Positions 2,292 to 62,147 of a stretch of 64,000 nucleotides of DNA are shown in pieces. The number at the start of each line of letters is the position of its first letter. Within the stretch, counting starts at the first letter, position 1. The notes below the pieces were generated by a model. It was given only the letters and a program-made list of their open reading frames with translations. It searched no databases and had not been told where the DNA came from. The stretch is from Phaeosaccion multiseriatum (Eukaryota > Protista > Ochrophyta, other classes): assembly GCA_965112735.1 (NCBI GenBank), contig OZ218960.1:2356001-2420000 (forward strand), read 5' to 3'. The translations under genes and the position numbers were made by a program.

Positions 2292-2711
2292 GTTGTTGTC
2301 GGACCAAGCCTCCTGCCCTCTCCTCCTCCTCTCTCTCTCTCTCTCTCTCTCTCTGTCTGCAGCCGGATGTACTCCCGCGTGGCAAAGTCGCGTTATAAAT
2401 CGATGCTGAGAAAATTGAAAATTCCGAACCCCTGATTGCGGTAACAGTTGCAGGAGTTGCTGGCTTATTATTATGCACGAATTTTCGGAAAATTGATGCG
2501 ACAATTTGCAACTCAGCAACTCCCCAACACTTCATACACGCCAAGTACGGAGTGCACAGAGCTGACAGAAAAAAAGAAAACACGCCGCTACTCCCTTCCT
2601 ACGTAAGGAAAGGGAGTTGTGGGCACAGATAAAAAAAAAGCAGGAGTTAGGCCACACAATTAGCGCCCTATTAAGGCGAAAGATACCTTAGAAAAAAGGA
2701 CGGACATCATC

Positions 2712-5700
2712 ATGTCGACCCTCCCTGAGCCCGAGTCGAGGTCGAGGTCGAGGTCACGCGGCCGTGCCATCGTTGAAAAGATGAAGGAGAAGGTCCGGGG
2801 AACTCCCTCCCAGTCGCCAGCTCCTCGCGAACGACGCCACAGTGGGACTCGATCCGGTACCCCCTCCCAGTCTCCAGCTCCTCGCGAGCGCCGGGGCGGC
2901 GAGCGGCGTCTGCCGGGGCGCAGCCGGTATAGGGCTGGCTCTGAGCCGTCTGAGGCATCCAATTACAGCCCCACTGAGCGAGGCCTGTCAGAGGGCCCAC
3001 GCGAGCCAATTGCCATTGTTGGCATGGCAGGTTAGTGTAGCTGGGTAAGCCACTGGACTTGTTGCATGGCTGCTGGGCGAAGTTGGGATAGGTGGTGCTT
3101 GTGGTGTCGACTGCTGGCTGAGAGAGCATGACTAAAAGGGGCCATTTAACTATGCACCCCACCACCCTCCTTGCCCTACCAATCACTCGTGCTGCCTACT
3201 CGGTGCAATCTCAATGCTGGTACTCTCTTCCCGTATGAACCCACACATACACGCACACGCCCAGGGATCTACCCCAATGGCTTGGAGAACAGCTTTGCCT
3301 TCCTCACCGCTCTCCGAGAGGGGGAGAGTCTCGTCAAGACCGTCCCCGCAGAGAGAAGCATTCTCAGCTCAAACATGGCTCGCAACGAGGTCAAGCACAC
3401 GGAAGGCGAGAGTGCGAAGGTGCGTGTATTCCTGAGGACGGGTTGTTGATAGGAGAAGCACAGCAAAGGCCCTCCTGCGTTGTGCATAACGCTCCTTCGG
3501 AAGCGGCCCTCCTTTCTCTCTCCGTTTGTACTATGTGGCGTCGAGAGAATAATTCCTCCCCTTCCCCTCCCCCCCTTCTCCCTCCTCTCCCTCGGTCCAC
3601 ACACATACAAATGCACACCCACTTTCGCTCTCATCCCTCTCTCTCATCTATCTCCATCTCTATCTCTATATTTCTCTCTCTCTCTCTTCTCTTGCACCCA
3701 GTACGACATCGGGGGCGTGACTTCGGCAAGGGGCACCTGGATCAACGACTACTCCTCCGCAGACCTCAGTTTCTTCGACCTCAAGATGGATGAGGCCATA
3801 GCTCAAGACAGGCAGACCCTCAAACTGCTCGAGGCCAGCTATCACGCCATCCAAGACGCCGGACTCACACTGGAAGACGTGCAGGTACAGCCGACGGCCT
3901 CAACACACACCACCATCGTCACCACCTTCCACAACCACCACACCATCATCATCACTCACCCACCCACCCACCCACCTGTCGTTTCATCCCTTCATTCATT
4001 CAGGACAAGCTGACGACAGGCGTGTTTGTCGGCAACATGAGCTACGACTCTCAAATCTTGAGTGCCCACGCAACCTCAGTGCACTCCACCGCCTATGACG
4101 TCACCTCGGGCGGAAGCATGATGTGAGTGAGTGCGTGAGCAAGTGTGAAAGCCGTCTTGGGGGTGTGGATGAATACACCACCTTCACTCATCACATGGTT
4201 GCATATCCATCTCCCTCCCGCGCTGCTGTGCGGCCTGAGCAATACAAAACATCACCAAATCCATGTCCGCACCACTAGCAGCTCACCCCCGCCCACACTT
4301 CTACCCTCCCCTGCACCTGCATGTCTGTACAACACCTATCCCTCTATAGCGCCAACCGAGTGAGCTTTGCCCTGAACCTGAAGGGTCCCTCGGTCACCAT
4401 GGACACCGCCTGCTCTTCTTCCGGCTACGCGCTGGTAAGATGCACAGATACAGATAGATACAGATAGATACAGATAGATACAGATACAGATAGATACAGA
4501 TAGATACAGATAGATACAGATAGATACAGATAGATACAGATAGATACCAGGGAAGGAAAGGAGCGAGGCTGGGCTGCTGGGTGTTCTTGTGTTCGTGAGC
4601 GGTATGGTACTCTTTCTCCCCTCTTTTTGTTGCAAGTGAAGGGGAAGCAAGAAGAGAAGAGACACATCGGTTCGACACGGCTCTACCTCCACGCAAACGC
4701 CCGGGCCGCGGCCTCGGGGGGGGGGGGGGGGTGGGGGGAAAGCAAACGGCAAAGCCAACAAGACAGCACGAACCCCCTCACCCTCACCCTCACCCTCACC
4801 CTGATATGTATCTTACAGCCTCGTCCTGGTCCTCCCCCCTCGCTCCCTCGCTCACTCCCTCCTCCTTCTCACCCCTCGAATGTGTGTGCTTCAGGCCGTG
4901 GCAAGCAACTTCATACTCACGGGAGCGTGTGACGTGGCTATCGTGGCCGGAGTGAACTTGCTTCAAGCCATGTCCATGTTTCAAACGGCAAGCGTCGCAG
5001 GTGTGTGTGTGTGTGGGTGGGTGGTGGTGAAGGAATGTGAAGGAATGCTCTCACTATCACTAGAACAAGTTGCTCTTGCCTGGGCAGTGGGTGCTGGAAG
5101 AGCCATTCATTTGAGGCTTTCCTGCCCCTCTTCCAGTCATATAGGAAGCAAGCAAGCAACACCTGATTTGATTCGCCCCCTCCCCTCTCCTCTCTTACAT
5201 ACGCAAACTTGCTTAGGCATGCTTGCTCCGGATGGGCGATGTAAGACTTACTCCGACAAGGCCAACGGGTATGGGAGGGGGGAAGCCATTGCCGTAGTGG
5301 TGCTTGTGAGGGAAAACGTGCTTCTCTCTCGCGTGGAGAGGGTGAGGGCTTATGCTGAGCTCATGGCGTACGGTGTGAACAGTGATGGGCAGACGGTGGT
5401 GCCAATTGTTCGACCCTCCTCTTCGCAGCAACAGGTGCTCTTCAGGAAGTAAGTACAAGGAAGGAAGGAAGGAAGGAAGGAAGGACAAAGGAAGGGTTCC
5501 CGTCGTGCCTCTGTGTCTCTCTCCCTCCTGTGTATGTCTTGACGCAACTGGGACCACTGACAAACGCACGCGTTTTCATCATCCTAAATCTGCCGTCCTT
5601 CACACCACAGGGTTGTGCAGCAAGCCGGCGTCACTCCCTCCGATGTAAGTATCCGTAGACAATCCACTCCCTGCCTGCCCATATGCCTGCCCGCCCATAC

Positions 5701-8700: not shown

Positions 8701-11700
8701 CCCACCCCATCCCATCCCTTCCCTAACTTAACTTGCCCTACCCTCCCCTCGCCTCCCCTACCCCTACCCCGTACATAAACTTAAAAAAACACACATAACA
8801 CATGCCCCGTTCCTTCCTTCCTTCCTTCCTTCCTTCCTTCCTTCCTTCCTTCCTTCCTTCCTCCTTCCTTCCTCCTTCCCACCACCACAGAGTTTTACGC
8901 CGACGTGCACCACGTGTCATCCCTGGGTCAGAAGTATGGGCTCAAGTTCAGTGTGCTGGAGGAGCTCAAGAAGGACGAGGAGTCGAGCATCGTGGACACC
9001 AACCTTGTGGCTCAGCTGGCCATCTTCTCCATGCACTACGCGTGCGCACAGAGACTCCTTCGTAGTGGCGTCTCGCCCAACATCGTCGGTGAGTGGGAGT
9101 GGGACAGGAAGGGTGTGTGGGGGGGAGTGTGACTGGGTAGGTGGGTGGGTGGGTGGGTGGGTGGGGTGACTCTTTTTTCTCTCTCTCTCTCTCTCTCTTT
9201 CTTTCTCTCCCTTTCCCTCTCCCTCTCTTTCTCTCCGTCCACTTCTCCCTGGCTCTTCCTCATTGTCTTCCCCCAACCCCCCCTCCACCATGCATTCCAC
9301 ACACTCTCCTTCTGTCCTTTGCTCCTCTGCTCCTCTCCAGTCGGTCACTCCCTCGGCGACATCTCCGCTGCATGGCTCGCCGGAGCAATTTCCCTCGAGG
9401 AAGCCGTGCAAGTGGTCGTCGCACGTTGCACCCTCCAACAACGAGTGGCCAATGGCACCGGGCGCATGGCCGCTGTGTCACTGTCCCCTGCCGAAGCCAA
9501 GAAGTACATTGAGGAAGTGGCGCACATTGGGCAGGTGGAGATCGCTGCCATCAACACGTACAACTCCATCACCGTGTCGGGACACTTGGAGGCTGTGGAC
9601 GCCCTTGCCAAGGTATGTCAGCTGAGAAAGCTCCCGATGAAAGCTTCTCTTCTGGCATCTTGTAGGAAATACTTGTCTCTGCCCCTAGTGTGCCTTGCAG
9701 TTGTGATCCGATAATTCGCGGCCTATCTCTTTGTGAGTACTATCCCCCCTGCAACTGACTGTCTTGCCTTTCTTTCTTCCTTTCTTCCTCCCTCTCTCTC
9801 TCCCTCCCTCCCTCCCGCCCTCCCTCCCGTCCTCCCTCTCTCCCTCCTTCCCTCCCTCCCTCCCTCCCTCCCTTCCTCCCTCCCTTCCTTCCTTCCTTCC
9901 TTCCTTCCTTCCTTCCTTCCCGCCACACATACATACACAACCCACTCCACCCACTTGCTTGCCTATCTATCATCATCACATCAACAGAATTGCGAGGCAA
10001 AAGGCATCTTCGCACGCACTCTCCTCACCGAGTGTGCCTTCCACAGCTACCAAATGGACCCCATCGAGGCGGACTTCAAGGCCAAGCTCGCCGACATCCA
10101 GAGCAAGATCCCCTCCCTCTCGCTGCTCTCCACCGTCACCGGCAAGGCGGTGCTGGGCTCCCAGTACGACGCCGATTATTGGTGGAAGAACTGTAGGGGC
10201 TCGGTGCACTTTGCGCCTGCCATAGAGGCCATTCTCGACTCAGGTGCGTTGTGGTGTGTGTGTGTGTGTGTGTAGGTGTGTGTGTAGGTGTGTGTGTAGG
10301 TGTGTGTGTAGGTGTGGTTGTGCGTGTATGTAAGTGTGTGTGTATGGCTGTGTGTGTGTGCGGGTGTGTGTGTGTGTGTGTGTGTGTGAGTGTGAGTGTG
10401 GGTGTGCGTTTGCATGATGCGGCTGTGTTGTTGTCGCTTGACCTTCCTTTGACTTAACTGCTAGTTTGGCTGCTAGTGTCGGTCGGTCAGCCCTTTCCGT
10501 CGGTCGGTATCCATCTTCGTTCTTGGTGGTTGGTGGCGTGTTCCATACGATACAACGGACAAAAGAAAAGAGCAGGCGTGTGAGCTCCTAACTTACTCGA
10601 AGTAACTCCCTCCCTTCCCACGCTACCCCCAACCTCTACCTCTCCGCTGTGCCTCTCTTTGCCGCTCCACAGGCTGCCGTGTCTTCGTGGAGATTGGTGC
10701 CCGTCCCGTGTTGGCCAGCTACATCTCCGAACTGTCCGAGTCCATGAACATCGAGCCCAAGGACCTGCTGCTCGTGTCTGCACTGCCCAACCGTCCGACC
10801 AAGAAGTTCCCCACGCCCATCCGTTCAGATGAGCACCTCATGGCGGCCACCACTTGGCTGCACCTTGCTGGGCTGGCCGTTCGATGGGACAAGGTCAGTT
10901 AGTTGCGTGTGCGTGCGTGTACGTGCAGTCGGGTTTATGGTCTTTCTTTAGAACGGAGGAGACAAAGGAGGTAAACACTAGACAAGAGAGAAAGATGTCA
11001 CTTTACTTCTCCCTTGCTCACACCCACAACCATACCCACCGCCACCTTCCAATGTTCCTACCATCCGTACTTTCATACTCTCTCTCTTTTACACACACAC
11101 ACACATACAGGTGCTACCCGTGCACGAGCGAGTGCGTGTGCCCCTCTACCCGTACGACCGCTCCTACGTGCACTACCACGAGTCGCTGGGCCGCGTGCCT
11201 CGCTCCATCCACGAGCTCCTCGGCCACCGACTGACCCAGGCCGTGCCCGCTTTCCGTCATGACTTGGCCGTCTTTGAGAAGAAGATTAGCCCGGGAGAGC
11301 TTGGGTATCTTTGGGACCACGTGGTCATGGGCTTTGGGGCCATCCTCCCTGGTGCGGCTTTTGCGGAGATGGTAACGGCGGCTGCTATGGAGGCGACGGG
11401 TGTGCTGGCGGCGGCAGGGCCGGGAGGGGGAGGAGGAGGAGGAGGAGGAGGAGGAGGAGGAGGAGAAGGGGGAGGAGGGCAAGCAGGAGGAGGAGCAGGA
11501 GGGGCTTCTACCATTTCTCCAGGGTTGTCAGCAGCAATGGGTTCAACAGCGCAGAACCACAGCCACGGCCGCACGGCCAAGCTGCACCACATCGATCTCA
11601 TCAAAACCATCCCCTTGCAAGGCTTGCCGCTCATCCGCACCCGCGTCAAGGCCATGTGGCCGCCTCGATCCAAGGCGGCGCTGCTCACGGCAGAGGTCAT

Positions 11701-12926
11701 CGTGTACTCTGTGCTCAACGGAGGGAATGAGATGCTGCACGCCTCAGCTGAGGTGAGCGTCTTCGACCTTGCTCTTCCGGCCACCCCGACCGCAGCCCTC
11801 CCCGCTCTGCCGGCACCACCATCAGCCGTTGGTGATTCAGCAGACGAGGAGGGCGCTGCTACGGCTCCTCTCCCCCCTGTGGTGGGCAAGTGGGTATCGG
11901 CAGGCGGAGGGATTAAGCGCAGCATCTCCCAGGAGACTTTTTACGGAGAGATTACCAAGAGTTTCGGCTTCCAGTACGGCCCGGCCTTCGCGCGGTGCGA
12001 AGTGGCCCTCGTGCTGGAGGATGGCACCGTGTGCGCGTCCCAGCCGGCCCATGTGACTGCAACTGCAACTGCTGCTGCTGCTGCTGCGCCCCCCCCTCCT
12101 GCCCACACCCGTCGGCTGTCTCCACAAGAGGCCGCTGAAGAGGCGGAGCAGCTGCACATCGCCACGTTGGCGAGTTTAATCGGTGCCAAGTTCCGTGGAG
12201 CGGCGTCGCTGCTACACCCAACCGTGCTGGATGTGGCCTTTCAGCTCAGCATCTTGCTCGTGGATGCGCCAGAGGTAAGCAAGAAAGGGAGGAAGGCAGG
12301 AGGGGAGGGGGGGGAAACAGCTCTGTGTGTTTTGTGTGCTCTGCACTGGACCCTCTTGGGGCTTCTCCTCATTTACATTCACTCGCTTACCCACTCACTC
12401 ACTCACTCACTCACTCACTCACTCACTCACTCACTCACTCACACTCATTTACCCACTCTCTCACCTACCCACTCACTTTCCCACTCACTCCCTCACTCAC
12501 TCACTCCCTCACTCACTCCCTCACTCACTCACTCACTCACTCACCAACCTCGGCAGGGGGAGGGTGGCGATGACTCATCCGCCAACCTGTTGCCCGGTCG
12601 TGTGAGAGACCTTGTCGTACACGCCGCTTGTGCTGACCTGCCCTCCTCCAGTCAGCTGTGGATGAAGCTCCAGCAGGCCCCCGCATTCGACTCCATGCGC
12701 GAGGTCACCATCCACTGCTTGACTGGCGACGGCTTCAGGGTGTTTGACTGCATCCTGCAGCTGCGCAGTCTGACTGATCCCAAGCCGCCCGTTGTGAGGG
12801 GGCCGTACTACGCGGTGAGTGTTATGTGTATGTGTGTGTGTGAGTGTGAGTGTGTGTGTGTATGTGGGTATGCGTTCCACACCATTTCGATAAGTCAGCA
12901 GCACTCACACCAATACTCACACCTCA

Positions 12927-12961
<35 letters not shown>

Positions 12962-13715
12962 CAGCTGCGCGGCTTGGGCACCGAGGACGAGAAGCGAAAG
13001 AGAGAGGCCCTGCAGCAAGAGATCGAAGACGCGTACGAGGGATGGATGCGGCCCCCGGACGAGAAGGAGGAGAAGGCGAAGAAGGCCGAGGAGGCACTGA
13101 CGCAAGTGTCCGTGTCGGATCAGGTCATGGCGTCGGTGTGGGAGACGCTGCCCCCTGGTCTCATTGCGTCGTTGGCCGTGGAGGGCGCGGAGGAGGAGGA
13201 AGTTGCCAGGGTCAAGGAGACAAGTGAGTGCTTGTTAAGAGTGCGTGCTGCGAGGGCAAAGAGGGCTCCGAGTGCCTCGGGTTGGGGGTGTGGTTTGTCT
13301 GATTGGGAGGGGGGAGGGGGGGGGAGGAGGAGCGCACCGCTAGGAGAGAGAAAGAGAGAGTGCCAAAGTACAAAGTACAAAGTACAAAGGAAAGCCGCTC
13401 AGCGTTTGTTAGGCTCGTCCGTCTTTCCATCATGGTCTGTACTCATGCTTGCACTCATGCTTGTACTCCCCCCCTCATGTCTGTTACCTGCCAATCGTGG
13501 CTGCTTCTTGCCTGTGCTGACAGAGGACACAGCTGGGCTCGTTGTGGTGGCGTGGAGCCCAGAGTCTACCGTCGCTCTAGCCAGCGCCATGGAAGCTGCT
13601 TGCCTCAAGGCGGGCGGAGCAGGTGAGTGAGTGAGTGAGTGAGTGAGTGAGTCGGTATTGGGAGGCACTGTACTATTCTACACCGCATACAAAAGAGTAC
13701 TCAATTGGTCTGTCT

Positions 13716-13750
<35 letters not shown>

Positions 13751-14593
13751 ACTCAGCCAGTCAGTCAGTCAGTCCGTCAGTCACTCAAGCCGGTCAGTCA
13801 GTCAGTCGGTCAGTCAGTCAGTCAGTCAGTTCGTCAGTCAGTTCGTCAGTCAGCCAGTGGTGTGCGACAAGGGGAAAGAGTAGTTGGCCATTCATTGATT
13901 GTTCGTGCTGCGCTCTTTCGCTCGCCTCATCCTCCCGCCTTCCCTCCCTCCTTCCCTCCCTCCCCCTCCACCTCCTTACCTCCCTCCCTCCCTCCCTCCC
14001 CCGCCCCCCACCTCCCTCCCTACCCCAGCCCGGCCTGTGAAGGGCATCGCTCTGTGTGATTTAGTGTCTCCCTTCTGTAACGGCTTGCAGGGCTTGGACA
14101 CGGCCCCGGACAAGCTCGACGCGGCCCTGGAGCAGCTGCGTGAGCAAGTGTCAAGCTTCACCAGCAGCGACTCCGTCCCAACCTTCGATGTTCTCTTTGC
14201 CGCCCCCCTTGACTTGGCTTGTGCCGCCGTGTCCACAGGTAACAAAGTTCAAGGGGCGAGAGTGTGAGAGGGCAAAGGCAAGGGCAAAGGCAGGGTCCCA
14301 ATGTTGTGTGGTTTTTTTGTTCGTTGTCCGTCCGTACCATGCGTTGCTTCCTTCGCTCACCCCCCCCCCCCCTCCCCGCCAACAACACGTACAACACACT
14401 CTACCAGGCACCCCTGAGGAGGAACTGACACAGGAGGTGGTGGTGATGAAGTACCAACAAGCATCTGTGGGCTTCATCCTCTTGGCCCGTGCCCTGCTCG
14501 ACAACCCTCTTGAGGCCATGACGAGGGCGTTTTACACCATCACCAGCGGAGCGCAGCCGCCCAACTCAGGCGCCGGCAACACGTGAGTAGGAA

Positions 14594-14653
<60 letters not shown>

Positions 14654-17600
14654 AGTTTGTAATAGGAATAATCTGTCGGTCAGTCTGTCTGTCAGTCAGT
14701 CAGTCAGTCACGTAGATGAGATCGACGCCACGTACCAACGGTTGACTCTTTAGGAGAAAAGAAGAAGCCGATCGGGTCAGTCGATTCGCTTATGTATCCC
14801 GTGTAATGCTTCCCGCCCCTCTACTCTCGACCAATCAATCCATTGACTCACCAATGGCAGCGACGCGTACACAAGCGTCACCTCGGCCGTCTCGTCTGTG
14901 GTGCCCATGTCAAGAACGATGGCAATGGAGGTAAGGCCTGGCTGGTGGTGCTGCTTGCCTTCCCTCTCCCTTCAACTCTCGCTCCCCGTCCCACTCACGG
15001 CCCACAAACCTGCGTTTGCATGCGTTTCCATCGGCATTGTTGCCGTCTTGCCCCCCCCCCCCCCCCTTCTTCCCTTCCCTTCTCTTCTCTTCTCTTCTCT
15101 TCCCCCTCCCAGGTGATTGGCACTCTCGAAGTGGCGCAGTTGGACCTGCCCCTCACCCCGACGCCATCCACCTCCTCCCCTGACAGCCCGTCCTGGGCCA
15201 CCATCGCTGACAAGTGCGCCTTCTGGCTACACACTTGGTTCACCTCCATAGCGGCCCGAGGAGGCGAGAATTACTTTAGCGAGGTAGCGTCCGACGCCTC
15301 GGGGGTTGACTTTGCCCTCGTGCTTCGCCGGGTGCCTTGCAAGCCGACGCACGACGTTACGGGGACCAGACGAGCAGTGGAAGCAGCAGCAGCAGCAGCA
15401 GCAGCAGGGGGAGGGAGCTCGAACTGGTCTTCGGTGGTGGGTCGGTTGGATGAAAAGGTTCGTCTGAGCAGCGTGGCGACGGAGTCGTGCGTAAGGAGCA
15501 GCATCAGCAGCAACACCACGGCTCTGCTCGTTCCGGACGGCTTTGAGCTGATCACCGCCACCGCGCTGACCCCTCACGCCGTGGTGGGCTACCGCAGCGG
15601 GGGTGGCGGGGCTACCGTTGCCGGCGTGCTGGCGGCTTCCTCGTATGGCGGCGGCAGTGACCGCGCCATGGTGCCCTCCCAGCTACTGCACGACGTCGAA
15701 GACAACAAGAACGACAAGGCCTATCACGGGGTACTGGCGGCCACCTTGCCGTCGGCAGTGGCCTGCATTACCCAACTCTCTTCCCTTGGCTCCTGGTACG
15801 GCTTCTTGTCGCCACCATCCTCCTCCTCCTCCTCCTCCTGCTACCGCATCGTGGTGCTGGACAGCGAGTCCGTGCTCGGCAAGATGGCATGCTCTGCCCT
15901 GTCAAAGTTCGTGCCCGGTGCAGAGGAGGCGGTGGTCGGGGTGCCGGTGGGCAAGGGGGGGGCGGGCATGGAGGTGTTGACCTCCTCGCTTTTGGCGTCC
16001 AGCGAGGTAGCTGCCGTTGTCGTGGCGTACAATGATGGTGGTGATGGTGTTGGTGATAGCAACTCCACGCGCGTGCTGGAGCAAGCGGTGCTTGACAAGC
16101 TGATTGACGTTGGGCGGGTCATCTTCCTCACGCCCTGTGGCGATGGCGACGACGCTGCTGGAGTGTCCTGTGCTGTTCGCCGAGTGGTGAAGCACACGCA
16201 GTCCGTCATCAACTTCCCCGGTCACTCCTGCTACGCCGCCACTCCCTCGGTGATGAAGGCCGCGTTACGCCTAGTGGCGGAGGTCCACTCTGCCGGCCGC
16301 TTGACTAGCGTGGCGTTGCCCTCGGCACCAGCAGCAGCAGCATCAGGACGAGCAGAGTTACCACCACCACCGCCGCCAGCCCTTGGTGATACCGCAGCAG
16401 TTGGTGATACAGCAGCAGCAGCGGTGACCAAGAGCAGCCCTTGGCCGTGTCTCCACCCCTTCCTGCCCCCCGGCCAATGGCCCAGTGACAAGACATACCT
16501 CTTCCTCGGTGGCACCAAGGGCTTCGGTTTCACCACCGCCACCCTCATGGCCCGTGGCGGTGCCAAACACTTCATCCTCGCCTCTCGGAAACCCCCCACG
16601 GGACCGGAGGCGCAGCCCATCTTGGAGCTTCGCCGGGCCGTCGCTGCGGCTTCTGAGGGGGGCGGAGGAGGAGGAGGAGGAGGAGGGACTGTCGATGTTG
16701 TGTCGGTGGACATTACCCGCTGGGAAGACTTTGAAGAACGCCTCTTGCCTCTGCTGAAGTGCCGCCCTCCTCTCGGCGGGGTGATGTGCACGGCCATGGT
16801 TCTGGAGGACCTGGTGCTGCCCAATCTGTACTTGGACAAGCTCTGGTCCACCAGCGCACCCAAGGTGAGTGTGTGAGTGAGTGTGTGAGTGAGTGAGTGA
16901 GTGACGTGAGTTGCGTAAGGGGTCATGTTACAGGGTGAAGGCCTGGTGTCAGTCAGTCGCTGGTAAGCTAGTTCTTAGTGTAAGTTAGTTGGTCAGTGTT
17001 AGTCTATGCTTTTATGTGAAAGGCTGGGGAGCCATCGGTTGGCGGTCAGTGGTGTGTATACGTATATGGGTGAGAGAGAGAGAGAAAGAGGGAGGGGCTC
17101 TACCTTACCGCGTACCTTGTGTACAGTACGCCTAAACGAAAAAGCAATCCGCTAACCACCAACCACCCCCCCCCCCCGACCTCTTCATACCCTACCCATG
17201 TACCTACCTCTTCACTACATACAAACATACCCTACCCATGTACCTACCTCTTCACTACATACAAACATACCCTACCCATGTACCTACCTCTTCACTACAT
17301 ACAAACATACCCTACCCATGTACCTACCTCTTCACTACATACAAACATACCCTACCCATGTACCTATCTCTTGACTACATACAAACAACAAACACCCCCA
17401 GGTCCTCGGTACCCTCAACGTCCTCCGCCTATGCCGGATGGTGCCTCGCTCCACCTCCCTCGACTTTGTCATCTTCTTCTCCTCCATCGCCTCCATCCTC
17501 GGCAACGCAGGCCAGGCCGCCTACTCCGCCGCCAACGGTTTCATGGACTTCATGGCTCTCTCGATGCAGCGGCAAGGTATCCCGGCCCTCTCGGTCAATT

Positions 17601-18183
17601 GGGGAGCCATTGGTGATACAGGGGTGTTGTCGAGGGACAGCCGCGTCAAGGAGTTTTTGGAGAAGGGCGGATTCCACAGCATTGAGCCGGCCGATGGCTT
17701 GGCGAGTCTGGAGCTCGCGTTGGATGTGCTGCGCAACACCGACGCGGCCTTTTTGTTTAGCAAGTCATCCTTCGCCACCACCGCTGGAAGGAGTCAGGGA
17801 GGCAGCAAGTCGGCCATGTCGGGGGCCGGGCGGGTGGGCAGCTCTTCGGTGTTTTCCATCGTGGAAGAGGACGAGTTCGACGACGAAGAGGAGGGAGAGG
17901 GAGGAAGCGCTGCCCTATCTTCTGCTCATCGCCATCGTGCGGTGCTTGCCTCTGGACAGCTCATGGCGGCGTTTTTGCACCTCAATGTGTTTTGCAAGAC
18001 GCCGAATGGGAGGCTGATCGCGGAGCAGGCAAGAGGCGTGGACTACCTCAACCTCAAGGCTGAGCTCCAGAGGTAAGTCGCAAGATCTTGCTTGCTTTCT
18101 TGCTTGCTTCATTGACTGATTGACGGACTGACGGACTGACGGACTGACGGACTGAAGCTGTGCACGTGAGCTTGAGAGTTTTA

Positions 18184-18218
<35 letters not shown>

Positions 18219-20963
18219 CCTAAGAGTGGCCAGCTGCTGATGCTCTGATCGATTGGGAGATTGACTCGACTGACTGACTGACTGACTGACTGACTGACTG
18301 ACTGACTCGTAGACCGCTATGAAAGCTTGTTGGACACCCAACCAACACCCAACATACATTTCCTTCCACCCACCCACCCACCCACCCACCCACCCACCCA
18401 CGGGGGGAACCCTTCCCAGCGAGGAGGCAAGCGGTGACGGCGACAGCGGCGAAGCCGAGATCATCGCTGGCCTCGACGTTCGCAAGCAAGGCCACCTCTT
18501 GGAGCGATTCCTGCAGTACGTCACCAACCCGAGGGCACGCTCCGAGCTCGTGATTACCTACGTCAAGCGCTGTGTGGTTGTGGTGGTGGGCAATGACCCC
18601 TCTACTGTGAGCGGCATCGCGGACAGTGCGACACCCAAGGATGTAGGGCTGGACAGTCTGAGTGGACAGATGGTCGTGTCGGGTCTTACCACAGGCATGG
18701 GACAGCCTACGGAGATTTCCCTGCAGGAGTTGGTGGGGGGACAAAAGACGTTTGCAGACTTGGTACGTAATTCACTTGTTGCTTGGCTTAGCTTGGCTTA
18801 GCTTAGCTTAGCTTGAGTGGGATTGGAGTGGCTTGGGTTGGGTAGGGTTGGGTTGGGTTGGGTTGTGGGTTGGGATGGGTTGGGTTGGTTTGGTGGAGTG
18901 TGGTTGAGTGATTGAGTGGTTGGTTGCTCGATTGATTGCAAGAATTGAGTGATTGGTGGAAAGCTAACTCTCCCCCCTTTTCTCTCTCCCCCCCCCCCCC
19001 TAATCCCCTCCTCTCTTCCCCTTTCCCTCCTCCCGTCGCTCTCCCCCACCTTCCCTTCCTCTGTCTCTCCCCCTCTCCCCCCCACCCTCCCTCCCTCCCT
19101 CCCTCCCTCCCTCCCTCCCTCCCTCCCCTCTCTCCCCCTTTCTCTCTCTGCTTGATGTTCCCTGTTTAGGCGGAGCTCTACACGGCAGAGCTGGAGGATT
19201 TGCTTGCCGAGCAAGGCATTGACGTTGTCGAGGATGAGGTCAGTGAGGGAGACAGAGGCGCAGGGAGGGAGGGATAGGGAGGGAGGGAGGGAGAGAAAGG
19301 GGAAGAGAGGGAGCACGGAGATACGCCTTGTCGAACTGCTTTCACTCCCTCACTCACTCACTCACTCACTCGCTCATTTACTCTCTCCCTCACTCACTCT
19401 CTAACTCACTCTACGTACCTACCTACCTACCTACCTACCTACCTACCTCCGTACCCACCCACCCCCCTACCTACCAACGTACCTACCTACCTATATACCT
19501 ACCTGCCTGCCTGCCTGCCTGCCTGCCTACCCACCCTTCTTCCCCCCTCCTTCCTACCTACTTACCTACCTATCCATCTACCTACCCACCTACCTACTCA
19601 CCTACCTCATAGGATGAGGACGGAAACGGAGCAGACGGCCCCGCTGCCAAGAAGACCATGTCTGTCAGCCCATTGCTCCCCCTGGGGCAACGCATCGAGC
19701 TTCCCCTCTGCCTCGACAAGGAGAGCAAGACTCTCACCGCCGTAGACGGCGTGGACGGGCTCGATGCCTTGTTCATACCGCAGAGTGGCGAACGTCTTGT
19801 GGTCGGAATGTTCGTCGTGCCGAGCTTTGGGGAAGGGGATGTCGTGGCCCAGGGAAGGTCGGCGGCATTGACCTCCATGTGCTTGTCGGCGGTTACGGCC
19901 AAGGTGAGCGAGAGACTTTTGGTTGGGGCAGGAGGAGTGAGGGAGGATTGGGAGAAGGAGCATTGGCGACCATTGGTGAGGATTGGTGAGGATTGACATT
20001 TGTCGGAAGTATAGCGTGAGCGTGCGCGCGTGTGTGTGCATGCACTTGGGGCTGTTTGCGGGTGGGGTCACAAATTATCTGACCCATACTCACACCACTT
20101 TCACACCACTTTTCATTGATGGGCTTCACCCCACCACACACACACACACACACACAGGTGCCCTTCCCCATCATCACCGTCCGTCCCGTTGCTGGCAGCA
20201 ACAGCAGCAACAAGAAATTTACGGGACAGGACATGCTCCCGAGCATCGTCACCAAGATTGTGGAGTACGCGAAGGGCGTGATTGAGGACGACCAGCACGA
20301 GACGCTTTCCATCGTGCTCATGGGGTACTCGGTGGGAGCGGCGCTCTCTCTCCAAGTGGCCAATCGCCTCGCTTCTCAGTACACCAATCTGCCTTTCCTC
20401 ATCCGGGTCAAGGGCGTGGTGCTCATCGACCCTCTGGTGTTGCAGCCTTCAGCAGCCCAGACCAGCAGCAAAAACAGCGTCCTGGCCAGGCTCAGGGGCC
20501 GAGGAGGAGGAGAAGGAGGGAAGGGTATCGTGGGAGTGGGCCAGCGCTATGCTGCCAAGTTCGCCGAGGCTGAAGCCCGACGCTCCAGCCACCTCGCTAC
20601 CGCCTTCCGCCTCCTGTTGGAGAAGAGGCTCTCCCCAGGGGTGGACTCGCCCGCCCTCGGAGTCGCTGTGCAGATGGTGGCAGCCGACGGTCTCACACCG
20701 GCAGCGGTGACGGCCTTGGCAGGGGCGCTGGGTAGCAACACTTCCTCCAAGGAGGTGATGGAGAAGTTCGAGGCGGGTGTGGAGTACACGCACGCACTCA
20801 CACGCATGATGAACTCCTTTGATGGGGCGAGCTTCCAAGTGGCCAAGGAGGGGCGGGAGGCGATCGCTGTACATGCGCTCTTCCCCTCGGACACGTGCAT
20901 GTCACCTTACGTGCCCTCCATTCTACCCGACTTGGAGGTAATGTGTGTGTGTGTGTGTGTGTG

Positions 20964-26600: not shown

Positions 26601-29548
26601 CTAACTGAGTGACTGACTAACTGCGTGACTGAGTAACTGAGTGACTGACTAACTGAGTGACTGACTAACTGAGTGACTGAGTGACTGGTTGACTGACTTA
26701 CTGAGTGACTGAATGACTGACCTTCTCCTCGGCGGTGGTGGTGATGATGCTAAAGTCATGCATGAACAATGGCCTGGGCACCGGCACGGCGAAGTCCCTC
26801 AGCATGACCCCCTCCTTATCAATGGCGTAAAAGTGCAGATACGGAGCCACCTCTGCATGCATGCCAAAGGCATACATCATGCCTGTGGACAGGTCGAGCT
26901 TGGGGTGTGCCGTGAAGGGATGTCGTAGCTTGCCTCCAAAAGTGACGAGGCCGATGGTCTCGAGCATGCCGTCGCACATGATCTTGAGCTGATAAGGCAT
27001 GTCCCACTCCTGCAGCGCCATGAGCCGTCCTGGTGGTGGTGGTGGTGGTGGTGGTGGTGGTGGTGGTGGTGGTGGTGGTGGTGGGGGGGGGGGGGGGGGG
27101 CATGCTTCATTTGGTTTGTTGCTTCATGTGTGTGTGTTTGTGTGTGTTTGTGTGTGTGTGTATGTGTGTGTGTGTTTGTGAGTGTATCTGTGCGCGTTTG
27201 AATGGGCGGAGGGGGTAGAGACTCAGAAGAGAAGTTTGGGACATGGGCTTTCTTCTTCTTCTACTTCTTCTTCTACTTCTTCTTCTTCTTCTCTTCGACC
27301 TTACTCCGACCCCGACCCTTATATATAATACATATAGTATGAAGTAAGAGCACTTGCGACCCTTGACGCTGACAAAAAGCGCTACCTTCCGCACCTACAC
27401 CTATACACACACACCCTTACGTAAGCATTAGGTTGATTCTCATAAGCCTATACACATGTACCTGCATGGAACCTCAGTGAGGTGTTGGCTGTCCCGGCCA
27501 ACCCCTCTCCCAGGCTGCACAGACCAAGCTCCTTGCGGATGGTGTATGCGGTAAGCTCCGATACGCCTCTCTGACCCTTCATGTCTCCTGACAAGAGAGA
27601 GGGCATGTCAAGAGGAGGGAGGGAGGGAGGGAGGGAAAGATACAACGTGAGGTGGAGTAAGTACGGGTCGGACGCCTTCACTCCGCACACTCCACAGCAC
27701 ACTACTGCCCACACTCACTCACTCACTTACTCACACCTACTCACCTACTCACCCACTCACTCACTAACTAACTCACTAACTCACTCACTCACTCACTCAT
27801 CACTCACTCATCACTCACTCACTCACTCACTCACTAACCCACTCTCTCACTCACTCACTCACTCACTCACTCACTCACTCACTCACTCACTATCCCACTC
27901 TCTCACTCACTCACTCGCTCACCCACGCACTCACCCATCTTGACGTAGTAGGCCTGGCCTGCCTCCTTCTCCTGCGTGAGCCTCCTTGTCCGCACCCACC
28001 GCCTGGAGTACAGCGCCTTGCCGCCCTTGATGCGGAGGGAATGCACGAGTCCGTCGCCATCGAAGATGTGGTAGCCCCTGTGGTGTTTTGTGTGTTGTCG
28101 TACGAGGTAGGTAGGTAGGTGGGTAGGAAGGTGGGTAGGTGGGGTAGGTAGGTAGGTAGGTGGGTACGTAGGTAGGTAGGTAGGCAAGGAAGGAAGTAGG
28201 GTAGATACATGGGTAGAAGGAAAGGTAGGTAGGTAGGTAGGTAGGTAGGTAGGTAGGTAGGTAGGACTTGGGGCAAGACTTCGGAACCTGGCGCCATCTT
28301 CTCTCTCTGCACCTCTGTCTTTTGTCTTTCATCTCTCCCTCTGTCTTTCTCTTGTGTCTCTTTCTTCATGCGAGCGCGTGCGTGCGCGTACGTGTGTGCG
28401 TGAGTGTGCGTGTGTGTTCCGTGCAATTCCCGTTCGTCATCGTACCTCAAAGGAGAGAGACGCGGACTGGGCCCGTTGCGAGAGAACAAGCCATTCATGG
28501 CGGCAGGTAGGCTTCCCTCCACCACACACTCACAGGGCGCCTCAGACTCATTCTTGTCCCCAATGGTCGCGTAGGCGCCGGTCGTGTGCCTCTTGACAAG
28601 CTTGTCCGGCTAATGCCAGTCGTTCGTTAATCAAACAGGACAGAGAGAGAGAGAGAGAGAGCGGGGGGGGGGGGCGGGAGGTTCATTCATCCATCTACAT
28701 ATACATCTTTTTGACAAGAAAGAAGAAGCAAGGGAGAGTGTCAGGCTATTGAGGGCAGGAGGAGGAGAGGCCAAAGGGGTGAAACTGGAGGGGGATAGAG
28801 GAGAGGGGAGAGGGGCCAGGGGCCAGGGCTGAGGGCGAAGGAGGCGGGGGGGGGCTTGAGAGAGTTAGGAAGCTCGAGAATGCGTCGCAGTGTTATCTCG
28901 TCAACATGCACTAGTCTTACTCATTGCGTGTTTCGCTTGCACTCTCGCCCTCCTGTCGCCCTTGCGGCTCTTTGTTTTGGGTCTCTGAGGCGGTCTTCTC
29001 CTTCTCTTACCTTGGCCTTCCAGTCCTCGTTGAGTTGCTTGGTGATCTGCTCCAGCTGCGCCAGCATGGCTGCCTCCTTGGCGCCTCCACCGCCGCCACC
29101 ACCTCCACCTCCCCCTCCTTTCCCTCCTCCTGCTGCTGCTCCTCCACCAGCACTGGTGCTGAGTCTGCTAGGGTTGGCTGCATACTCGGTCAGGGCCTGC
29201 GTGATCTTGACGATGGCCACCCCCTTGATCTTTGGGCACACCTTCTTCACCTCTTTCTTCAGAGCGTCCTTTCCGCCTGTCTTGTTAATAGCCACCAGGG
29301 CATCCAGATCGAAGGCGCTCTGAAGCGAAAACAGGCGGGCGATGGTGGGAAAGGAGTATGCGGCGATAGGGAAGACGAGGGGACAAAAGGTCTACTGTAA
29401 GGTTTTTTTTTTGTGTGGAATGAATGCACGGTACGGGGTTATTGGCCCGTCAACATGTGTAAGCACGTACGCTGAGAGCCGTGATGTTGCTGTCGCCGGC
29501 AGCATCTCTCAGGCCGAAGGAATCGAAGAAGGCGTCCACTGTTGCCAT
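21983..29548 (-). CDS. Carotenoid cleavage dioxygenase (RPE65/CCD family, CCD1-like) with N-terminal SAM-like extension; 14 exons, ~644 aa
   Basis: Exons 29471-29548, 29011-29319, 28446-28609, 27935-28077, 27462-27587, 26722-27029, 25619-25743, 24996-25081, 24510-24601, 24068-24189, 23798-23879, 23244-23321, 22478-22632, 21983-22049 (1,935 nt, in frame). Motifs RNGPSP, YHIFDGDG, GTANT, EFPNI, GECVFIP, EDDGFL, and all four Fe-ligand histidines: FTAHPK, FMHDF, FAFHQANAW, VPLGFHALF. Confidence 0.94.
26017..26720. repeat. ~700-bp compound 8/12-mer satellite (GAGTGACT / GAGTAACT / GACTAACT) inside a CCD intron
   Basis: Directly visible tandem array. Confidence 0.95.
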
Positions 29549-34853: not shown

Positions 34854-37800
34854 CTACCTCCCCGCGGTGTGTCTGACAATGAACGGGTGATTCATGACCT
34901 CGGCCACAGGGAGGCGATCCGAGGCCTCGTACCGCAGCAAGCTCCTGAAAGGGTAGAGCAGTGAAGGGGTAGTGAGGAAGGAGGGGGGGGGGGCGGCAGT
35001 GAATGAGATCACGACATACACACAGACACATACACAAACACTCATGAACGCACTCTCACGCACCCACTCACTCTCTCTCCCTCTCAGACACCCTCCCACA
35101 CATACCCACCCAACCTCCCCCCCCCTCTACCCAAACGCACTCACTTGATGAGGTCCTGCGCATCCTCAGGTACCCTGTCCCCGGGGGGGAAGCGCACGTC
35201 GCACTTGATGATGCGGCGATACCTTTTGGAGGGAGAGGGGTGGACAGGCAGGCAGTACCGAGTGTCAGGACGAGAGAGGGGTGGACAGGCAGGCAGTACC
35301 GAGTGTCAGGACGAGAGAGGGGTGGACAGGCAGGCAGTACCGAGTGTCAGGACGAGAGAGGGATGGACAGACAGGCAGTACCGAGTGTCAGGACGAGAGA
35401 GGGTGGGGAGTGTCAGGACAGGCAGTACCGAGTGTCAGGACGAGAGAGGGTGGGGAGTGTCAGGACAGGCAGTACCGAGTGTCAGGACGAGAGAGGGGTG
35501 GACAGGCAGGCAGTACCGAGTGTCAGGACGAGAGAGGGTGGGGAGTGTCAGGACAGGCAGTACCGAGTGTCAGGACGAGAGAGGGGTGGACAGACAGGCA
35601 GTACCGAGTGTCAGGACGAGAGAGGGTGGGGAGTGTCAGGACAGGCAGTACCGAGTGTCAGGACGAGAGAGGGGTGGACAGACAGGCAGTACCGAGTGTC
35701 AGGACGAGAGAGGGGTGGACAGACAGGCAGTACCGAGTCTCAGGACGAGAGAGGGGTGGACAGGCAGGCAGTACCGAGTGTCAGGATGAGAGAGGGTGGG
35801 GGGGGGGGGTGTCAGGACCGTGATGACGTACATGGCGGCGGACCCGTCGGCCTCAAAGGGAGGCTCCCCCACGAGTAACTCATACGCAAGCACGCCCACT
35901 GCCCAAGCGTCCACCATCTCGTTATGGGTCTTGCCCTGGTGGGGGAAGTACGTCAATGGGTGAGTGCGTGTGTGAGTGTAGGTCGTCGGGTGGGTATATC
36001 GGTATATGGGTGTACGGGTAGGTGGATGGGTGAGTAGGGATCAAGGCGAGGAGGGGGGTGCGTGAGTGAGTGAGTGAGTGAGTGAGTGATTGAGAAAGGG
36101 GGTAGGGACGGACAGGAAATGAGGTTAGGCCATACTAGCTACGCAACGGTTGGCTCTCGGCCCTCCGTGTGTACATACATACATAACATATATGTAAGTG
36201 TGTGCATGGGGTGTGAATGTATATACCCCCCCACCCCACTCGCCTCGATCATCTCCGGTGAGAGGTAGTCCAAGGTCCCGCAGAAGGTCGTCCTCCGACT
36301 CGAAGGCGCGTGGATGGACCACCCAAAGTCCGCAATCTTCATCTCTCCATGGTGCCCCACCAGCAAGTTCTCCGGCTTGAGGTCCCTGTGGATCACCTTC
36401 TTGCTGTGACAGTAGTCAAGCGCAAGGGCCACCTCTCGGACGTATCGGGCCGTGCGGGAGGGACTCAGGCGGCTGACAAGAGAGAGGAGAAGGGAAGGAG
36501 GGACAACAAGAGAGGGATAGGGAGGAAGGCATAAGTAAGGCATGCGCGACGAGGGACACGCAAGGACGTCACACCTCCAAAGTAAAAACAAAGGCAAAGC
36601 AAAGCGAGCCCTCCCTCCCTCCCTTCCTTCCTTCTCTCCCTCCGTCCCTCCCTCCCTTCCTTCCTTCTCTCCCTCCGTCCCTCCCTCCCTTCCTTCCTTC
36701 TCTCCCTCCGTCCCTCCCTCCCTTCCTTCCCTCCCTCCGTCCCTCCCTTCCTTCCTTCTCTCCCTCCGTCCCTCCCTTCCTTCCTTCTCTCCCTCCGTCC
36801 CTCCCTCCCTTCCTTCTCTCCCTCCGTCCCTCCCTCCCTTCCTTCCTTCTCTCCCTCCGTCCCTCCCTTCCTTCCTTCTCTCCCTCCGTCCCTCCCTCCC
36901 TTCCTTCTCTCCCTCCGTCCCTCCCTCCCTTCCTTCTCTCCCTCCGTCCCTCCCTCCCTTCCTTCCTTCTCTCCCTCCGTCCCTCCCTTCCTTCCTTCTC
37001 TCCCTCCGTCCCTCCCTCCCTTCCTTCCTTCTCTCCCTCCGTCCCTCCCTTCCTTCCTTCTCTCCCTCCGTCCCTCCCTCCCTTCCTTCCTTCTCTCCCT
37101 CCGTCCCTCCCTCCCTTCCTTCCTTCTCTCCCTCCGTCCCTCCCTCCCTTCCTTCCTTCTCTCCCTCCGTCCCTCCCTCCCTTCCTTCCTTCTCTCCCTC
37201 CGTCCCTCCCTCCCTTCCTTCCTTCTCTCCCTCCGTCCCTCCCTCCCTTCCTTCCTTCTCTCCCTCCGTCCCTCCCTCCCTTCCTTCCTTCTCTCCCTCC
37301 GTCCCTCCCTTCCTTCCTTCTCTCCCTCCGTCCCTCCCTTCCTTCCTTCTCTCCCTCCGTCCCTCCGTCCCTCCCTTCCTTCCTTCTCTCCCTCCCTCCC
37401 TTCCTTCCTTCTCTCCCTCCCTCCCTCCCTCCCTCCCTTCCTTCCTTCTCTCCCTCCGTCCCTCCCTTCCTTCTCTCCCTCCGTCCCTCCCTTCCTTCCT
37501 TCTCTCCCTCCGTCCCTCCCTCCCCTCCCTTCCCTTCCCTCCCTCCCTCCCTCCGCTTCCTCCTGCCTTACCTCTTCTCCTTGAGTTCCTCCATGAGCTC
37601 CCCTCCCGGAGCGTACTCCAAGATGAGATAGATACGCTTGGGGCAGTAGAAGTACCCAAACATGCGCAGTATGTTGCGGTGCCGCAGATGGCTCTGAATC
37701 TCGATCTCGCGTCGGAGCTGTAGTCCCGAGGAGGAGGGAGGAGCACACGCCGCGTACGTACGGTTTGTTCGCCATTGGGCAGCGCCATTAGCGGCCACCA

Positions 37801-38439
37801 AAGTGCGGCACAAGGCACAAGAGAGGAGCCGAGTGGAGAGAGGTAGAGGGGACGGGCGGGAGGAGAGGGGAGGGATGGCAGTGGATGGGTTGGGAAGGGT
37901 GAGAAGGGGGTACGGTACAGCGCTAGTCCAAAGACTAAAAAAGATGGTGAGAGTGACCCTCCACCAGCGAGGCAAGGCACACTCGATATCGCGTGCGGCG
38001 TAGAGATGCGAACATGGAAGAAAGACGTGACCTCAGTGAGAGCGGGGGGTGAGGTGTGCCCACGACTGTACTCGCCACGAGCAGGGCAGCAGGAAGGGGC
38101 AATGGGAGCGGTGCACAATCCTTGAGAGCCACTGGGGCAAAGCGAACAGAGACCAGGTAAGGTGCTTGCTTTTCCAAAAGCAAAGGGGGCCCGGAGGGGT
38201 GCCTTCCGCAGCAACCGAGCAGGGAGCAAGGGAGAAAGAGTCCAGCAACGCCAGCACCCACCTGATGCTCGATCTTGTTTTTGAGGAGCTGCTTCTTGCG
38301 CAGCACCTTCAATGCCACGATGTACCCGCTCTTCTTCTCTCTGGCCAAGTACACGCAGCCGAACTTGCCCATGCCCAGCTTCCTGCCAATGTCAAAGTCA
38401 TCCAAGCACCAATCTCGGGCTGCAGGCGCATGCGGTTGG

Positions 38440-61133: not shown

Positions 61134-62147
61134 ATGCGTTTCCACAGAGCAATTGCCACTGCAGCTGGTTGCGGCTGCTCGCTTCGATATGCGGCAGCGT
61201 TCGCCCCAAGCGTGGGAAGGACTCACGGTGTTGTGCGGTCACAACCAACGTTTCTTGGGGGGGGGTCTACTCGCCTAAATGTGGCCAGCGTTCAGCCGCC
61301 GGCCCCTGTGGACGTGCTGAGGGAAACGCAGGTGATGGGAGAGGGAGCGGGGGCGCTCGTTGGGGAGGATGTGGCGGCGAGCAGCGTTTTGGCAGCAGTA
61401 GCAGCGCCCGTCGAGAAAAAGAAGAGGAAGGGAAAGGAGGCAACCGTCAGGGCTGAGGGAGATACTCTAGAGAATCTGCCCTACATGAAGAGGACCGTGG
61501 CAGTGACGTTCTTGTATGCCACCGCAGTCGTCGTCAACGCTCTCATGCACGTCACCTCCCCCATGATGGCCGCGCAAGTGGCGGCGGCCACCGTGGCAGG
61601 GGTGCTGGCAGCCGACCTCTTCACGGGCTTCTTCCACTTTGGCGTGGACAACTACGGCGACAAGGACACGCCGGGGCTGGGCATGGTCATTGACGCCTTC
61701 CAGGGCCACCATGACACGCCGTGGACCATCACGCACCGACCTTTCTGCAACAACGTGCACAAAGTGGCCTACTTGGTCCTGCCCCTCATGACCATGGTCG
61801 TGCTCGCCAACCTTGGGCCCGTGGGCACCATCTTCGGTGTTGGGTTCTGCATGGGCAATCTCATGTGCCAGGAGCTCCACAAGCAGGCGCATCAGACGGT
61901 GGCGACGGCCCCCTGGAAGCAGCTGCAATCATTGGGCGTCATCTTGCCCAAGAGTGTGCACGGGAAGCACCACCAAAATCCCTTCTCTTCCAACTACTGC
62001 ATCGTCACAGGCACCTTCAACCCCCTCCTGGACGGGCTCAATACCTGGCGATTCTTGGAGAACGTCATCTTTAAGCTCACGGGTGTGGAGCCCAACACAT
62101 GGAAGAATTGCCCGTCCACCAAGGAGGAGTCCCTGGCGCTCTTCTAA
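61134..62147 (+). CDS. FAD4: FAD4-like (TMEM189/Kua family) plastid lipid desaturase, intronless
   Basis: Leader ending AAAFAP; His motifs ADLFTGFFHFGVDNYG, AFQGHHDTPWTIT, QELHKQAH, HGKHH, YCIVTGTFNPLLD, TGVEPNTW. Confidence 0.9.
   Translation: MRFHRAIATAAGCGCSLRYAAAFAPSVGRTHGVVRSQPTFLGGGSTRLNVASVQPPAPVDVLRETQVMGEGAGALVGEDVAASSVLAAVAAPVEKKKRKGKEATVRAEGDTLENLPYMKRTVAVTFLYATAVVVNALMHVTSPMMAAQVAAATVAGVLAADLFTGFFHFGVDNYGDKDTPGLGMVIDAFQGHHDTPWTITHRPFCNNVHKVAYLVLPLMTMVVLANLGPVGTIFGVGFCMGNLMCQELHKQAHQTVATAPWKQLQSLGVILPKSVHGKHHQNPFSSNYCIVTGTFNPLLDGLNTWRFLENVIFKLTGVEPNTWKNCPSTKEESLALF

Follow-up and report, generated by a model that had tools for sequence, protein, structure and literature searches.

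An enoylreductase-sized block without a recognisable enoylreductase signature in a single-module type I polyketide synthase gene of the alga Phaeosaccion multiseriatum

The DNA analyzed is a 64,000-nucleotide stretch of the Phaeosaccion multiseriatum genome (contig OZ218960.1, positions 2,356,001 to 2,420,000), hereafter the window, which is intron-rich, has a GC content of about 58%, and carries a multi-exon gene located between about 2.9 and 21 kb. The gene, which lies on the plus strand with all its parts described below, encodes a spliced, single-module polyketide synthase (PKS) of the cis-acyltransferase type I class. The order of the domains is ketosynthase (KS), acyltransferase (AT), dehydratase (DH), structural ketoreductase subdomain (psiKR), a block of about 350 residues denoted X, catalytic ketoreductase (KR), an acyl carrier protein (ACP)-like and a thioesterase (TE)-like domain. 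In Pfam searches run exon by exon, KS, AT, DH and KR were detected in this order, on one strand and in successive exons: ketoacyl-synt and Ketoacyl-synt_C at 3.4-7.3 kb, Acyl_transf_1 at 8.4-10.3 kb, PKS_DH_N at 11.1-12.3 kb, KR at 16.5-17.7 kb. The ACP region gave no Pfam match at E<=0.01, and was assigned from its GLDSLS phosphopantetheine motif (18646-18663). The C-terminal alpha/beta-hydrolase, thioesterase-like, features a GYSVGA nucleophile elbow (20323-20340); its Thioesterase and Abhydrolase Pfam matches (20.1-21.2 kb) have E values of about 1e-4, all under the gathering cut-offs. Unimodular cis-AT PKSs of algae are regarded as iterative (PMC4661987), and the enzyme analyzed here presumably works in the same way.

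DH and KR retain their active-site motifs, as maintained in a preliminary description of the locus. The DH active-site His motif, LWDHVVMGFGAILPGAA (H-x3-G-x5-P; 11309-11359), is one residue longer than usual, and resides in an open reading frame (ORF; 11111-13627) matching PKS_DH_N with E=3.3e-8; the Asp motif, LLHPTVLDVAFQLS (D-x3-Q; 12209-12250), falls in a region matched by PS-DH at E=1.2e-4, slightly short of the cut-off. The catalytic KR is split in two halves. The N-half (16478-16864) includes the glycine (NADPH) loop TYLFLGGTKGFG (16493-16528), with the GGxxGxG pattern kept, the VLED motif (16799-16810), and the Lys residue of SAPK; the C-half (17402-17728) includes the Ser of FFSSIAS and the Tyr and Asn of AAYSAAN, located at 17474-17536. 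The N-half matches Pfam KR with an E value of 2.4e-13, its best matches among solved structures being LovB (7cpx, E=2.6e-5) and PsoA (9x2c, E=2.5e-4); the C-half matches Pfam KR with an E value of 4e-19, and is 44-55% identical to bacterial PKS KRs. The two halves score 61 and 101 bits, respectively, against a bacterial PKS profile. In the profile alignment 'AMVLEDLVL' is set on 'aAvldDgll', so that the third residue of the LDD motif corresponds to an Asp. Asp at this position is typical of B-type KRs and, with the Lys, Ser, Tyr and Asn residues also present, the domain is B-type-like by its motifs. Gly runs are found within both domains, about 30 Gly-rich residues right after the DH His motif (about 11400-11500), and a G10 run between strand beta-2 of KR and its helix (about 16650-16690). 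Along with a poly-Ala run in X, they suggest that coding-repeat expansion is tolerated in surface loops.

From psiKR to the KR glycine loop, the coding sequence was followed over three exons. The first (14408-14582), read from the sequence, encodes part of psiKR, ends with ...AFYTITSGAQPPNSGAGN, and has the donor site AC/GTGAGT (the slash marks the exon border); within it, AFYTITSGAQ (14527-14556) is weakly aligned, in a bacterial psiKR-ER-KR profile (ER, enoylreductase), with the columns reading 'lwlvtrgaqav', a match that alone is not significant. The second is a mini-exon of 70 nt (14861-14930; ...SAVSSVVPMSRTMAME), phase 2, identified by its splice sites and frame, and encoding the psiKR 'GLxRtxxxE' strand. 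The third is a long exon of 584 codons (15113-16864), bordered by the acceptor cag/GTG at 15113 and the donor AAG/gtgagt after 16864, which runs from VIGTLEVAQLDL to SAPK. It encodes the psiKR tail (15113-15262), assigned by direct reading (VIGTLEVAQLDL...) and by a helix predicted by DSSP in a low-confidence model, the X block (15263-16312), a low-complexity Ala/Pro linker (16313-16477) containing two copies of an 18-bp repeat (GDTAAV/GDTAAA), and the N-half of the catalytic KR, the glycine loop of which begins at residue 461 of the exon.

In PKSs and fatty acid synthases (FASs) with an active ER, this domain is inserted between the structural and catalytic subdomains of KR, and is about 310-330 residues long. 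X sits at this very point. About 450 residues separate VAQLDL (15131-15148) from the KR glycine loop, a surplus of about 350 residues relative to an ER-less module, and the distance from TSGAQ to TYLFLGG is about 491 residues vs. about 447 columns in the ER-containing profile, which was built from 56 bacterial psiKR-ER-KR segments. By landmark spacing X is therefore both ER-placed and ER-sized, and the block of about 350 residues reported at the ER position in the preliminary description was found there, within one open exon. The same spacing, with an ER-sized block between psiKR and KR, is found in bacterial single-module type I PKSs with an active ER, such as those encoded by a Deinococcus sp. 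KNUC1210 plasmid (WP_239048595.1) and by Methylosinus trichosporium pOB3b3 (WP_003614821.1), which are 44-47% identical to the algal protein in the KR C-half. These proteins carry a canonical ER (VLIHAAAGGVG or VLIHSATGGLG), whereas nothing comparable is found in X.

X has the character of coding DNA. Stop codons are absent from the 584 codons of the long exon, and number 19 in each of the other plus-strand frames. The GC content at third codon positions (GC3) of X is 0.70-0.90, as in the KS, AT, KR and TE exons, and about 0.5 in introns; it dips only at two short repeat tracts, an (AGC)8.7 microsatellite detected by Tandem Repeats Finder and encoding the poly-Ala run (15382-15407), and the linker, where it falls to 0.3-0.5. 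By open frame and exon-like GC3, X looks translated, and is predicted from the sequence to be part of one exon. If the exon model were wrong, X being in part an in-frame intron or untranslated DNA, or if the gene were a decaying pseudogene, X would have no meaning at the protein level. We regard this as most improbable, since GC3 is higher in X than in the microsatellite-rich introns, no intron-like repeats are found in X, the catalytic motifs of the KS, AT, DH and KR exons are all intact, and no stop codon interrupts any exon examined. Two observations favour it nonetheless: introns of this gene can stay open for hundreds of codons, as in the ORF 10982-13627, which crosses repeat-rich introns, and the four public runs holding the locus behave as genomic DNA rather than RNA, their contigs being broken at repeats. 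'Joints' between these contigs were considered as splice evidence, and rejected as they all sit at (GCA)n-type repeats. In all four runs the summed contig word depth rises to 10^4-10^5 at 16344-16527 and 18736-18900, because of (GCA)n-like and (TGGGT)n repeats.

The introns of the gene are full of tetranucleotide microsatellites, as (GTCA)n, (TGTC)n, (GTGA)n, (CCTC)n and (CCAC)n, densely packed at 13623-14021, 14594-14710, 16865-16911 and 18113-18401. The intron separating the KR exons hosts at 17186-17387 a 40-bp unit (CATACCCTACCCATGTACC...) repeated 5.1 times with 98% identity, and open in two plus-strand frames. Several introns are in frame and devoid of stops, and at least two are crossed by the ORF 10982-13627; naive ORF calling consequently merges exons.

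X was searched for ER or medium-chain dehydrogenase/reductase (MDR) ancestry by several approaches. In Pfam, the long exon yielded KR only at E<=1, and five sub-ranges of X yielded no match at E<=10; in NCBIfam, matches were of the KR type only, and none fell in X. The whole X block compared by phmmer to all PDB chains, including those of LovB, PsoA, EcPKS2, FAS and MAS, gave no match at E<=10, and its halves gave chance-level matches only (NrdI, E=1.1; PH0495, E=2.3). The former is a 39-residue match of 15632-15748 (X residues 174-212) to the flavodoxin-like NrdI (PDB 3n39; SYGGG...VP.Q...GV.A), and, although striking to the eye, was not used as evidence. A metagenome locus search revealed no relative of X, nor did a word search for which the queries were the exon and its KR part, and in which low-complexity words probably swamped the candidates; the word search covers proteins 0.55-1.75 times the length of the query, full-length PKSs being outside this range. 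As no relatives were found, no alignment of X could be built. For the two halves of KR, 61 and 101 bits were obtained against the same bacterial PKS set. Lack of ER similarity in X beside well-conserved KR sequences is what a dead domain under relaxed constraint would be expected to show.

In an active ER the NADPH-binding loop comes after the first Rossmann strand. Its motif, hhhH-A-x-x-GG[VL]G-x-x-A, was found by motif search in four of four bacterial ER controls, and is absent from the translation of X by direct reading. Lack of an ER-type NADPH loop and lack of any oxidoreductase family match in X make a working cis-ER very unlikely; whatever the origin of X, the PKS very probably lacks one, as had been anticipated in the preliminary description. 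Two of the more specific claims made there fared differently. All the strings quoted were located in the sequence at the places given, SRTMAME(V) at 14910-14933 included, but no method aligns RIVVLDSESVLGKMACSAL (15845-15901), which had been read as a degenerate NADPH loop, to the ER glycine loop, and no profile or pairwise method aligns to ER AVLDKLIDVGRVIFL (16085-16129), which had been read as an echo of the LAPGGRFVEI segment. This register was dropped as evidence, since no scoring method favours it. A second collinear register set by eye, pairing ASGVDFALVL with the ER NFRD strand, SYGGGS with the glycine loop, RIVVLDSES with GVDVVLNSL, and VLEQAVLDKLIDVGRVIFL with the C-terminal helix-strand, is likewise unfavoured by scoring methods. 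As two registers fit equally well by eye, matches of this sort are not evidence.

Glycine-rich strings do occur in X, outside an ER-loop context, and X might be a highly divergent, yet functional, nucleotide-binding reductase, enabling the PKS to reduce enoyl or other intermediates. The candidate elements are VGKGGAG (15947-15967), a G-x-G-x-x-G string in a putative beta-loop-alpha unit, and the SYGGGS loop (15641-15658). The former lies between a predicted strand (AVVGV) and a helix, a later strand ends with Asn-Asp, an arrangement reminiscent of a Rossmann-like fingerprint, and codon bias is uniformly exon-like throughout. By a rough calculation, however, chance alone should produce a G-x-G-x-x-G string about 0.4 times in 450 residues containing 9.4% Gly, the string found is not preceded by ER context, and neither Pfam nor PDB searches at E<=10 revealed any NAD(P)- or FAD-binding family, the best PDB matches being those at E=1.1 and 2.3 already described. 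A functional reductase is thus highly unlikely.

Whether X is an ER remnant is a separate question. Its position and size provide one line of support, ER being the only domain known at the psiKR/KR junction in type I PKSs and FASs. A second line comes from predicted structure. Both low-confidence models obtained feature a beta-rich stretch, followed by four beta-alpha units (RIVVL, AVVGV, AAVVVA, RVIFL), and such a layout, beta-rich first and beta-alpha-beta next, would be compatible with the MDR fold, which is made up of a GroES-like and a Rossmann lobe. Third, in a language-model feature search of the ESM-Atlas with X residues 100-400, the named neighbours listed were all MDR clusters, including arthropod 'fatty acid synthase-like', fungal ER and ER-KR clusters, and a haptophyte cluster. 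Scores were 0.83-0.87, with 123-139 of 256 features shared, the threshold of the tool being 0.9; by the calibration of the tool, these figures fit either chance or very distant relatives, and the neighbours are to be taken as leads only. They belong, though, to the family predicted beforehand from the position of X, and the coincidence carries some weight.

A sizeable set of results weighs against this origin, and against the claim of the preliminary description that the block is recognisable as a pseudo-ER, all alignment-based MDR/ER tests being negative. No relatives of X were found by phmmer among 1.84 billion representatives of about 15 billion predicted proteins. ER domains for comparison were taken from bacterial PKSs with a similar KR (plasmid PKSs and 80 genome loci), and a hidden Markov model (HMM) made from 80 bacterial PKS ER domains was run with all filters off: X scored -1.2 bits, reversed X -1.5 bits, and shuffled sequences scored as high as X or higher in 52 of 500 cases in the global mode, and 87 of 500 in the local mode. 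The probability assigned by hhalign to the pairing of X with ER was 0.05-0.3%, profile-global alignment gave z values of 0.3-1.9, varying with gap costs, hmmalign deleted the entire ER model and left X unaligned, and the ER sub-domains, each placed where it fits X best, do not follow a collinear order. AlphaFold (AF2) single-sequence models had a pLDDT of 37 for the exon and 34.5 for the X core, too low for fold assignment. Matches of these models in Foldseek PDB and Atlas shape searches were scattered (pyruvate kinase, FtsZ, ExoVII and one FAS modifying region among them), had TM<0.4, and were rejected as meaningless. Shuffled sequences reach Atlas scores like those of X a third of the time, and true family members typically share more features than X does with its neighbours. 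X is moreover rich in Ala, Ser, Gly and Pro, and contains microsatellite-derived runs. Finally, ER domains known to be inactive (ER0) are usually still recognisable by sequence.

Many of these results are what would be expected if X had never been an ER, and were instead a lineage-specific orphan insert filling a permissive loop between psiKR and KR, either a structural domain of a new kind, or an expansion that grew from repeats and is for the most part disordered. The functional outcome would be the same, as no cis-ER would be present. Lack of relatives in protein and metagenome searches, chance-level scores with ER profiles, amino acid composition, (AGC)n and 18-bp repeats within the exon, and model confidence in the 34-37 range all fit this view; so do the long Gly runs in the DH and KR exons, denoting a gene prone to coding-repeat expansion. 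Yet both the match to ER size and the exact ER insertion point would become coincidences, in a site where no domain but ER is known, and the Atlas neighbours are uniformly MDR. The hydrophobic beta-alpha periodicity predicted at residues 245-340 also argues for a folded alpha/beta unit. On balance, an orphan insert is an unlikely alternative. Less likely still, X may be a new, lineage-restricted folded domain which has replaced ER, perhaps endowed with a cryptic dinucleotide-binding beta-alpha-beta element at VGKGGAG. An ER origin of X is moderately probable.

The explanation favoured is that X is a decayed ER remnant, an extreme ER0 which would have lost both the NADPH loop and recognisable MDR sequence features. 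X would probably persist as a folded, or partly folded, spacer, holding the geometry of the psiKR/KR modifying region. Each cycle would comprise condensation, ketoreduction and dehydration, and go no further than the enoyl; the C-terminal hydrolase would free a chain that is unsaturated (polyene-like) or partly reduced, unless a trans-acting ER is recruited. Taken as a whole, this scheme is held with moderate confidence. An unsaturated or partly reduced product, or the use of a trans-ER, had been proposed in the preliminary description, and is reasonable given the lack of an ER signature and the intact DH and KR. A polyene is accordingly a candidate product by analogy with known systems; the sequence itself gives no information on the length of the chain, the type of product or the chemistry of its release.

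A trans-acting ER was sought within the window by running the ER HMM over the six frames of the 64 kb, and no MDR-type ORF was found, though introns could hide one; a partner ER elsewhere in the genome is possible. Among other ORFs in the window, one lying some 40 kb downstream of the PKS (61134-62147, plus strand) strongly matches Pfam Lipid_desat (E=5e-50), and another (36139-38229, minus strand) matches Pkinase (E=2.8e-24), the kinase domain being preceded by a long low-complexity N-terminal region. The ORFs 1492-1962, 2710-3183 and 28856-29320 gave no Pfam match at E<=0.001.

Inactive ERs are already well known in reducing PKSs, both in fungal highly reducing PKSs and in animal FAS-like PKSs. 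In LovB, ER0 does not bind NADPH, and ER activity is supplied in trans by LovC, a precedent supporting the trans-ER alternative. LovB and PsoA, fungal highly reducing PKSs with an inactive ER, resemble the algal PKS in KR only; the ER0 region of LovB is not matched by X, and LovB differs also because it has a CMeT and a condensation domain. The animal FAS-like PKSs EcPKS1 and EcPKS2 (PDB 9ctk and 9ctl) have a non-functional ER0 and make polyene products; their ER0 is ordered in a canonical MDR conformation, the fold being kept in the absence of activity (PMC11831141). Like them, the algal PKS has a single module, intact KR and DH, and at the ER position a domain that would be non-functional. 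Unlike them, X has no detectable similarity to the EcPKS ER0 (no PDB match at E<=10), and no MT0 can be recognised between DH and psiKR of the algal protein, which ends with a TE-like domain. The parrot psittacofulvin synthase MuPKS, a type I PKS that works iteratively and to which the elongation of polyene chains is attributed (PMC11739604), is the analogy for the product put forward in the preliminary description; it is a vertebrate FAS-like enzyme with a pseudo-MT, and was likened to the algal PKS by description.

Set beside these systems, the algal locus is at most an unusually decayed case of a PKS with an inactive ER, the extent of the loss being the unusual point. Should X be the relic of an ER, the locus adds to the known reducing PKSs in which ER is silent, its product is to be annotated as an unsaturated or partly reduced chain and not as a fatty acid, and it shows how far a domain may decay beside conserved neighbours. 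No new mechanism is implied, unless X proves to be a genuinely new domain, in which case it would be a structural or catalytic feature having no counterpart in known megasynthases. For the mining of algal natural products, the gene provides a PKS that is compact, probably iterative and equipped with a thioesterase, and that may make a polyene acid.

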